Below are positions 15,867 to 18,800 of a stretch of DNA of 64,000 bases, piece after piece. A model generated the notes under the pieces. That model ran no database searches. It was not told where the DNA came from and saw only the letters and a program-made list of their open reading frames with translations. The DNA comes from Blastocystis sp. Blastoise (Eukaryota; Protista; Bigyra: Opalinata), in NCBI GenBank assembly GCA_039096225.1, contig JBBPEB010000015.1, forward strand, positions 186,001-250,000, in the 5' to 3' direction. Position 1 is the stretch's first letter, and every line of letters starts with the position of its first letter. Position numbers and translations under genes: made by a program.

Positions 15867-18800
15867 ATGAAACTTAATTGTTTAATTAGCTTAATATTAT
15901 TTGTCTCTATTGTGTTTGCACAGGAGTCTATTCAAGTAGTACAAGGTCTTGTAGAAAGAACAATCGGCAAAGTATTTCTTATTCATATTGTATTTAATGC
16001 TTGTAAATCATTAGAAATATCTCTCTCAATTTAAATTTGAAGAAATCCCTCAGGAGAATGGTATGGATGTTTTTGAAATTTCTCAATCAGGTCAGAATGG
16101 TTCACCTATTCTCTTGAAAGGATCAAATGCATTGTCTATGGGTACTGCATTCCATAAGTAAGCTATTTTAATTTTTTATTATTGTTATTATCATATTTAA
16201 AAAAAAACATTTAGTTATTTAAAGTATTATACGAATTCGTCTATTACTTGGGGTGTTGATGGTACAGGAAACAATATAAATCTTCCTGATATTCTTCCTG
16301 CTGTTCCCAAAACTTGGCATAATGTCGTATTTATATATATTTACATATTTATTATAATATACATATATATGTATTTTTAATTTCTTTTCTTCTCATAGTT
16401 TTCTGTTAAGTATCGTTACTATCTGAATGTATGTACAATCAGTTATACGTCTGCCTTCTGGGATTGGAGTCGTTGGGAGCGGGAAATCGATTGGATGGCT
16501 CTTAATGGAATGAACATGCCTCTTACTTTTATAGGGTATATATATAGTATATATAGTATGTAATATGTATTATATTATAGTCAAGAATATATATGGCTGA
16601 AAGTATTTAAATCTATTGGTATCACTGAAGAACAAGCTCTCGAATTCTTTGGAGGACCTGCTTTTCTTATATCTTTTTTATTTATTTATTTATTTATTAT
16701 ATTTATTTGTTTATTTATCATTATTATTATTATCATTATTATTTATTATTTTTTATTTATTTATTTATATCTTTTTTATTTATTATATTTATTTATTTTA
16801 TTATTTTTTTATTTATATATTTATACATTTATTATTATTATTATTATTATAATTAATATATATACCTTAATTGTTACGCTTGGCAGAGAATGGGGAATAT
16901 TCAACGATGGATGGGACCGCTTCCTCTTTCCTGGGTCAACCAACAATGGGAACTGAATAAGAAAGTATAGTGCTATCATTATTCTATATTCTATATTATT
17001 AGTATTATATATTCTATTTTTAGTATTATTCTTATATTTATATTATATATATTATATATATATGTATATATAGATAGTAAAAAGACAGACTGAATATGGT
17101 ATGTTTCAAGTATATCCTGCTTTCGCTGGATTTGTTCCTGAAGCTATTAAAGTATATATATATATATTTATAATTATACTTATCATTATGTTTATATATA
17201 TATATATATAGATATTATACCCAAATAGTACAACAACTACAGCACGTGAATGGAACGCATTTAAAAGTCCAATTGGCGAATCAGTTGTACTGGACCCCCA
17301 AGACCCTCTTTTTAACGTTATTGGAAAGGCATTTATTGAAACTATAAAGTATTTATAATTAATATATATATATATATATATATATATATATATATATATA
17401 TATATATATATATATATATATAGTAAGGAATTAGGTGTTACTTCTCATCTTTATAATGCAGACCAATTTAATGAAATGGATATATCTTTTATATATATAT
17501 ATAGTATACTCTATGTATATATGTATATTTTCACGGGAATCCTTTATTATATACCCTAAATCAACAGATCTCACATATCTCCATAATGTAGCAAAAGGTA
17601 TATATATATATATATATATATATATATATATATATATATATATATATATATATATATATATATAGTTGCTATTGAGACCATGATAGCTGCCGATCCTGAT
17701 GCCATATGGGTTATGCAAGTAAATAGATTCCCGCGATTATTTATTACTATATATATGTATTTATAGGGATGGCAATTTTTAAGTGGATTTTGGACTGATG
17801 AACGTATATATATATATATATATATATATATATATATATATATATATATATATATATATATATATATATATATATATATATATATATATATATATATATA
17901 TATATATATATATATTTATATATATATATATATATATATATATATATATATATATATATATATATATATATATATAGTTTATTAATATTAGATCTTGATG
18001 CATGTGACCGTCCACTAATGAAACGCTTTGCGAAATTCCATAAGAATATATCTTTATAATTAATTATATATATTTATATATTATTATATGAACTAGTGCA
18101 GATTTATCTATGTACATATATATATTTCTTAATATATATTTCATTTGGTGTTTATTCCATAATAACGGAGATGAGAGAGGAATGTATATATATATATATA
18201 TATATATATATATATATATATATATGATATGTATATAGATATGGCAATTTAGATAGAGTAGGTCACGGTGTTATTGAAGATAAACATATATATACAGATA
18301 ATATGGTCGGCATAGGAATGACTCCAGAGGCTTTGGAACATAATCCTGTGATCTTTGATATGATGGCTGAAATGGGTTGGCGCCATGAAAAGGTGGCGGT
18401 TAATCAATGGATTGAATCTTATATCATAAGAAGATATGGACAAGAAAATATAGAAGCAAAAGAAGCTTGGAAGCATTTATTACATAATATATATATACAT
18501 GAAGAACCCGATACGGAATTGTATTCCAAACCCTCCTTGTCCCTCACTTATGACGCTAACTCCCTCACATTTAACGATTATAGTCACGGATACACAGTGT
18601 TAACGAAGATCCCTCATTTTAATATGAGAATTCGTACAGAGAAGAACAGTACTGCTATGTTCTATTCTTTTGAACATATTTTAAATGTATATATATATAT
18701 GATGTTTTATTGTATATAATTCCTTCTATTAAATAGTGAAACTACTTATATATATATATTATATCATTTCTATAGAGTATAAATGGCTTTAAAACTACTA

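Follow-up and report, generated by a model that had tools for sequence, protein, structure and literature searches.

Minor introns are usually rare, occur about once per gene and change slowly. In Blastocystis ST1, 346 U12-type introns have been described in 319 genes along with all four minor small nuclear RNAs (snRNAs) and seven minor-specific proteins (Gentekaki et al. 2017, PMC5608401), and these introns were found to be AT-AC in 77% of the cases and in phase 0 in 49%, with a length of approximately 40 nucleotides (nt) and a fast turnover within the genus (Larue and Roy 2023, PMC10639083). In Physarum polycephalum, the donor follows the pattern [G/A]TATC[C/T]TTT, with T frequent at position +6, and AT-AT is found among the non-canonical ends (Larue, Elias, Roy; bioRxiv 10.1101/2020.10.12.336362); non-canonical ends of U12-type introns are known in other organisms as well. 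The present analysis concerns Blastocystis sp. 'Blastoise', a stramenopile of the tortoise gut, and, in particular, a NAGLU/GH89 gene (copy A, one of four paralogues) that lies in a stretch of 64,000 nt of its genome (assembly GCA_039096225.1, contig JBBPEB010000015.1, positions 186,001 to 250,000 of the forward strand; from now on, the window, to which coordinates refer unless a contig is named). Three stretches of copy A are very probably genuine U12-type introns that are older than the divergence of the four NAGLU paralogues and whose signals have been worn by C-to-T changes in this copy; that the three introns are of the U12 type can be stated with high confidence.

With respect to ST1, which belongs to the same genus, the similarities are the prevalence of AT-AC ends, the enrichment in phase 0 and the presence of minor snRNAs. 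The Blastoise NAGLU introns differ from those of ST1 in their length (73-209 nt versus approximately 39-42 nt) and in being three in one gene, while the genome has a guanine plus cytosine (GC) content of only 24%, the donors of copy A carry T at +6 and one 3' end is AT. The +6T donors, the AT-AT end, the U12-type character kept between paralogues and a U6atac snRNA of the 'CC variant' are all shared with Physarum. There, however, the branch motif is TTTGA, with compensating changes in the U12 snRNA, whereas in Blastoise the branch box and U12 are canonical and the canonical +6C predominates. Similarity also extends to the AT-AC U12 introns of animals (such as P120 intron F), which share the ATATCC-type donor, a TCCTTAAC-type box close to the 3' end and the pairing with G6/G7 of U11. 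U12-type or AT-AC introns are not mentioned in the paper describing the genome of the tortoise isolate (Lind et al., Genome Research 2025). The novelty is limited to the occurrence of minor introns in this strain, their number of three per gene, their length compared with ST1, the different fates observed side by side in the paralogues and an annotation that is wrong at three sites; the published picture of Blastocystis as rich in AT-AC, phase-0 minor introns is unchanged.

The assembly consists of 33.3 Mb in 34 contigs, and the GC content across the window is 21-32%. Copy A is found on the plus strand from position 15867 to approximately 20363 and is made of about 21 short exons, which were matched exon by exon to the Pfam families PF12971, PF05089 and PF12972. 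Searches were made in this way, or by way of database proteins, rather than by searching or folding a joined spliced model. The exon-wise matches to PF05089 and PF12972 exceed the cut-offs, identifying the NAGLU TIM-barrel and NAGLU_C domains, while that to NAGLU_N (PF12971), limited to a single exon, scored 26.7 bits versus a cut-off of 28.3 bits. The sole Protein Data Bank match of the copy A exons is human NAGLU (4XWH), and the gene belongs to the NAGLU/GH89 family on the basis of its NAGLU_N, TIM-barrel and NAGLU_C domains. The corresponding deposited protein is KAK8803241.1 (hypothetical protein WA158_000935), which is 100% identical across the exon at 18240-18686. Cys-rich modules (19121-19330 and 20180-20360) are found within the C-terminal domain of NAGLU and attached to it, in common with paralogues B and C and, for the C-terminus, partly also with Balamuthia and Sycon.

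Intron 1 (16669-16877, plus strand as all features of copy A; 209 nt, 5% GC) is of the AT-AC class, starts with ATATCTTT and ends with CCTTAATTGTTAC. The exon upstream (16573-16668), ending with ..GGPAFL, aligns with chain positions 147-176 of 4XWH and with positions 41-70 of PF05089, and the exon downstream (16878-16966), starting with AWQRMGN, with chain positions 177-200 and profile positions 71-99, so that positions 176/177 of the chain and 70/71 of the profile are contiguous, residue by residue, with none lost or gained, and the ends of the intron are exact. Its branch box, CCTTAAT (16865-16871), is complementary to the UAAGGAA sequence of U12 and places the branch A 7 nt before the intron end. 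A 98-nt tandem duplication (16667-16861; 2.0 copies, 81% matches) extends from the donor onward, and explains why ATATCTTT recurs at 16767 and why this intron is longer. Intron 2 (17482-17554, 73 nt) is also AT-AC, with donor ATATCTTT, box CCTTTAT at 17541-17547, which is degenerate, and 3' end CCTTTATTATATAC. It separates the exon at 17424-17481, which ends with ..FNEMD and was defined by the alignment of NAGLU proteins, from that at 17555-17597, which starts with PKSTDL and is conserved in all four paralogues. Intron 3 (18048-18139, 92 nt) has AT-AT ends, with donor ATATCTTT, box TCTTAAT at 18127-18133 and 3' end TCTTAATATATAT; it is preceded by the exon LLILDL..FHKN (17978-18047, with an uncertain 5' limit), which is present in transcript contigs, and followed by the exon at 18140-18183, starting with FIWC, identified from both the transcripts and the NAGLU alignment. 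Alignment with six full-length NAGLU proteins places the two members of each exon pair, FNEMD/PKSTDL and ..FHKN/FIWC, in neighbouring columns, and the exons around introns 2 and 3 have lengths equal to those of the paralogues.

All three introns fall between complete codons (phase 0). Their donors match seven of the eight positions of the U12 consensus [A/G]TATCCTT, the only difference being T for C at +6, and the branch A of the three boxes is found 7-8 nt before the intron end; a pyrimidine tract is missing. The donor motif as such is not enriched in the window (ATATCTTT, 24 matches versus 24.6 expected), and RTATCCTT is rarer than expected (6 versus 13). With ATATCTTT at its chance level, the evidence is the position of the motif at exon ends rather than its count: given its density of approximately 1.9e-4 per base, three exact matches at exon ends would occur by chance with a probability of approximately 7e-12. 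The coordinates, ends and phase of the three introns, the boxes near their 3' ends and the restoration of conserved GH89 motifs, now seen as continuity in 4XWH, Pfam and NAGLU alignments, are those given in a preliminary description of this DNA made from its sequence, and its assignment of the introns to the U12 class is borne out by the donors, by the branch boxes and by the conservation of the intron type among the paralogues.

Direct evidence for splicing was obtained for intron 3. The read-level transcript search covered positions 17980-19490, where two independent transcript contigs were found, one from run X1, identical to the window, and one from run X2, a poly(A) gut metatranscriptome of another strain, which departs from the window at 29 listed exon positions. 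The two contigs lack the GT-AG introns at 18687-18775 and 18943-19035, and in both intron 3 is spliced: ..CCATAAGA (loose end ..TTCCATAAGA) is followed by AT TTCATTTGG from position 18138. The messenger RNA at this point reads CAT AAG AAT TTC ATT TGG, encoding HKN/FIW, and joins 18047 to 18140. An AT repeat of 2 nt permits three placements of the cut, none of which yields an AC or AG 3' end. Of the words sampled from 16400-18700, a fraction of 0.40 is present in run X1, to be compared with the value of 0.41 calculated if all exons and no introns were present; this share agrees with splicing of introns 1 and 2 as well, although it falls short of proof.

The genome contains four NAGLU paralogues with 42-43% protein identity, namely copy A in the window, B on contig C8, C in the distal part of contig C4 and D on contig C19. 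At site 1, the AT-AC intron of copy A (donor ATATCTTT) corresponds to a GT-AG intron at the same codon boundary in B, to an AT-AC intron in C (donor ATATCCAT, with a TCCTTGAT box) and to no intron in D. At site 2, all four copies have an AT-AC intron, with donor ATATCTTT in A and ATATCCTT in B, C and D. At site 3, the AT-AT intron of A (donor ATATCTTT) is matched by AT-AC introns in B and C (donor ATATCCTT) and in D (donor ATATCCTA). Thus, U12-type introns account for 10 of the 12 combinations of paralogue and site, the other two being a GT-AG intron and an absence. A phylogeny that included 15 further NAGLU proteins, but not D, which has no database protein, grouped A, B and C together (100/100), and A branched as the sister of B plus C. 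Among the orthologue loci considered for comparison, P0013 proved to be intronless. Since the sites are common to the paralogues, the introns predate the duplications and, as judged from the sequences of the four copies, appear to be old rather than recent gains. Within one genome, the NAGLU family therefore brings together every known fate of a minor intron, namely intact retention, retention with worn signals (+6T, AT end), conversion to GT-AG and loss, and represents a compact natural test set for the signal loss that can be tolerated in minor introns.

The frequency of the two donors was also estimated genome-wide with patterns that take in only introns of approximately 62-96 nt with a YCTTAAY box. 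Donor ATATCCTT, followed by YCTTAAY at 40-70 nt and then by AC, gave 92 matches versus 33 in the reversed control; the ATATCTTT version gave 57 matches versus 128 in the control, with many matches being repeat copies. When inspected by eye, a subjective count, approximately 80 of the 92 C matches and 20 of the 57 T matches were intron-like. These counts and the paralogues indicate that ATATCCTT predominates and that +6T is a minority state, confined at the NAGLU sites to copy A. In copy A, moreover, one 3' end is AT instead of AC and one branch box contains T in place of C, so that all the differences are in the C-to-T direction.

The components that would act on these introns were sought in the genome with Rfam. 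U11 (62.9 bits) and U6atac (63.8 bits) scored above the gathering score. U11 starts with AUAAAGGGC and keeps AAAGGG, and U12 keeps UAAGGAA, so that both recognition sequences are canonical. A 15-nt promoter box, CTTCTAATCAARATG, is present 44 nt upstream of U11, and the spacing is within 5 nt of this value at U12 and U6atac; in 33 Mb, exact copies are found only at the U11, U12 and U6atac loci (C4:1684338, C21:544987, C24:844668), while versions with one mismatch are found upstream of two U2 genes and one U4 gene. As a separate observation, ATTCTAATCAAAATG with approximately 190 near-identical following bases is present in at least 17 copies in the genome and belongs to a multi-copy element or gene family, not to an snRNA.

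The U6atac snRNA reads GAGCCGAGAGAAGG (GCCGA box) where the Rfam consensus has GAAAGGAGAGAAGG. This is the same as the 'CC variant' [GU]CCGA reported for oomycetes, Physarum, Acanthamoeba, cnidarians, Trichoplax and Physcomitrella, and noted as unable to pair well with U12 donors (Lopez, Rosenblad, Samuelsson 2008, PMC2396436); Blastocystis is not among the listed taxa. In mammals, C5/C6 of the 5' splice site pair with both G6/G7 of U11 and G14/G15 of U6atac (PMC4980772), whereas in Blastoise nucleotide 14 of U6atac is C and +6 would not be read by U6atac. The possibility that the AGCCGA sequence is a lineage-specific adaptation was considered and rejected, as it coincides with the variant described in 2008 and is found in metagenomes of very different habitats. 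A metagenome scan, with a pattern chosen not to match the human U6atac gene, returned 73 matches at 71 loci (coral, moss, marine, gut), and 62 of the 73 matches carry GAGCCG before AGAGAAGG. A subgroup from gut metagenomes, on contigs with 41-60% GC, is near-identical to the U6atac of Blastoise; these contigs are probably from human-associated Blastocystis, and the similarity suggests that the whole genus has the CC variant. From this distribution, the variant is ancient and unrelated to AT-richness.

By taking into account these features, a path for the erosion of the signals can be proposed. The introns would have been present before the paralogues diverged. The GGG of U11 would pair with donor positions +4 to +6, a U at +6 replacing the G-C pair with a G-U wobble, and U12 would pair with the CCTTAAT-like box just upstream of the 3' end. 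The CC variant of U6atac would be unable to pair with +6 or +7, whatever the base, and, as a consequence, +6 would be read by U11 alone, which may be the reason why T is tolerated there. In copy A, C-to-T wear would have affected the three donors (from ATATCC to ATATCT), one 3' end (from AC to AT) and one branch box, with splicing surviving at least for intron 3. Extended to lineages with the CC variant in general, where +6 would be checked only by a wobble-tolerant U11, AT-biased mutation would be able to erode ATATCC to ATATCT and AC to AT without loss of splicing; the NAGLU family would then be a snapshot of this process and the GT-AG intron of paralogue B its next step. This generalization is put forward as a tentative one, and is rather doubtful at present. 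If it were true, +6T should be more or less frequent across eukaryotes according to the U6atac variant, Physarum and Blastocystis lying at one extreme and animals and seed plants at the opposite one.

Several observations weigh against the reading of the three stretches as old U12-type introns with worn signals. Introns 1 and 2 rest on the protein alignment, the paralogues and the share of words in run X1, since the direct reads span only 17980-19490. The distance between the branch A and the 3' splice site is 8-9 nt, shorter than the 11-13 nt quoted as the optimum for mammals. T is found at +6 in three of three introns of copy A and in none of seven in the paralogues, and the composition of the exons gives no explanation: the idea that copy A is more AT-rich than its paralogues was rejected, with exon GC of 0.349-0.357 and GC at third codon positions (GC3) of 0.245-0.263 in A, B and C. 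Furthermore, as A is the sister of the other copies, C versus T at +6 cannot be polarized by parsimony alone, and the proposed C-to-T direction relies on the universal consensus instead. With respect to the snRNAs, the U12 gene scored 46.8 bits, below the Rfam gathering score of 53, despite its canonical UAAGGAA and the shared promoter box, and Rfam found no U4atac, either genome-wide or on a candidate locus. The latter, of 112 nt (C14:283791-283902, minus strand), is located behind a CTTCTAATCAARATG-type promoter box and shows a stem-loop at the 5' end, an Sm-like site and complementarity to stems I and II of U6atac in two stretches, with a calculated duplex energy of −28.1 kcal/mol versus −18.7 ± 3.5 for shuffled sequences. 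The set of minor snRNAs in this genome comprises U11, U6atac, the low-scoring U12 and, for U4atac, this candidate.

Among the alternatives, it might be proposed that copy A is decaying, or functionally released, and that the worn state of its U12 signals is due to relaxed selection and not to a tolerant spliceosome. All worn signals are indeed located in copy A, which also has the longest branch in the NAGLU tree (0.95 versus 0.53 and 0.39). Moreover, the conserved Glu of the LDLxxE motif, which we take to be the catalytic acid/base, is Cys in copy A (LDLDACD, 17994-18014), while the same column contains Asp in B and Glu in C, Balamuthia, Sycon, bird and tortoise. From its sequence, copy A may have an altered activity, or none; the substitution bears on enzyme activity and not on family membership, which is by fold. 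Copy A also lacks a 37-nt micro-exon that in B and C is found between FWTDE and LILDL. Its place is taken by a stretch of pure (TA)n (17804-17977), across which a phase-1 donor at 17803 faces a phase-2 acceptor at 17978, and the frame would be kept only by shifting the donor by 1 nt (TA..AG) or with an acceptor at 17991/17992. However, copy A is transcribed and spliced in two runs, its exon GC and GC3 are the same as in B and C, and the comparison of the window with the X2 strain revealed 20 synonymous and 7 non-synonymous codon differences, which speaks for purifying selection. Decay is therefore an unlikely, though not negligible, explanation.

Much less probable is the history initially proposed in the preliminary description, namely a recent, lineage-specific gain of three introns, accompanied by a shift of the donor consensus to the AT-rich ATATCTTT and by co-evolution of U11 and U6atac with it. 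In the NAGLU genes of Balamuthia and Sycon, all three sites are without intron, as would be expected for a recent gain. However, U12-type introns occupy sites 2 and 3 in each of the four paralogues, whose protein identity is 42-43%, and site 1 in A and C, so that a recent gain is not supported; a gain on the Blastocystis or stramenopile stem is possible. A shifted consensus is contradicted by the ATATCC donors of the paralogues and by the genome-wide excess of ATATCCTT, with no such excess for ATATCTTT. As to the snRNAs, the 5' splice-site box of U6atac does depart from the Rfam consensus, in line with co-evolution, but the GGG of U11 is canonical and the GCCGA box of U6atac corresponds to the CC variant, also found in contigs of 33-60% GC (coral, moss, gut metagenome), which does not provide any better pairing with U at +6. 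The adaptation of U11 and U6atac to an AT-rich consensus was thus abandoned.

Removal of the three introns by the major spliceosome, as members of the rare U2-type AT-AC class, was considered by taking into account that the terminal dinucleotides alone do not set the type of an intron. It is hardly credible for donors so close to the U12 consensus, with a branch box no more than 9 nt from the 3' end and without a pyrimidine tract, in a gene whose ordinary introns are of the GTATAT..ATAG form.

The deposited model KAK8803241.1 is wrong at all three introns, where GT-AG junctions were forced. It omits 25 conserved residues, including GPAFLAW, translates ISFIYIYI from intron 2 while omitting the exon at 17555-17597, and omits the exon LLILDL..FHKN. 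For paralogues B and C, splicing at the AT-AC sites is correct in the deposited models (ATATCC donors, ATATCCTT or, at site 1 of C, ATATCCAT). That the GT-AG model of copy A is instead the correct one and the three stretches are not introns can practically be dismissed, even if the annotation pipeline is said to favour introns supported by RNA sequencing, as the model loses conserved residues, reads an intron as protein and lacks an exon seen in transcripts. The use of nearby GT-AG junctions, an outcome that the preliminary description had taken into account, is accordingly contradicted by homology and, for intron 3, also by RNA. For annotation, the gene models of tortoise Blastocystis need a pass that allows for non-canonical junctions and variant donors.

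Outside copy A, a fourth U12-type intron was noticed in the window on the minus strand (61910-62041; AT-AC, phase 0, 132 nt, ATATCCTT .. TTCCTTAATTATCTAC), where it sits in a PDZ-like coding region (..KQLFERLTT on the upstream side). Two possible GT-AG U12-like introns are read from their motifs at 10146 on the minus strand (GTATCCTT .. TCTTTAATTCCATTAG) and at 42928 on the plus strand (GTATCTTT .. CCTTAATGTGAG).

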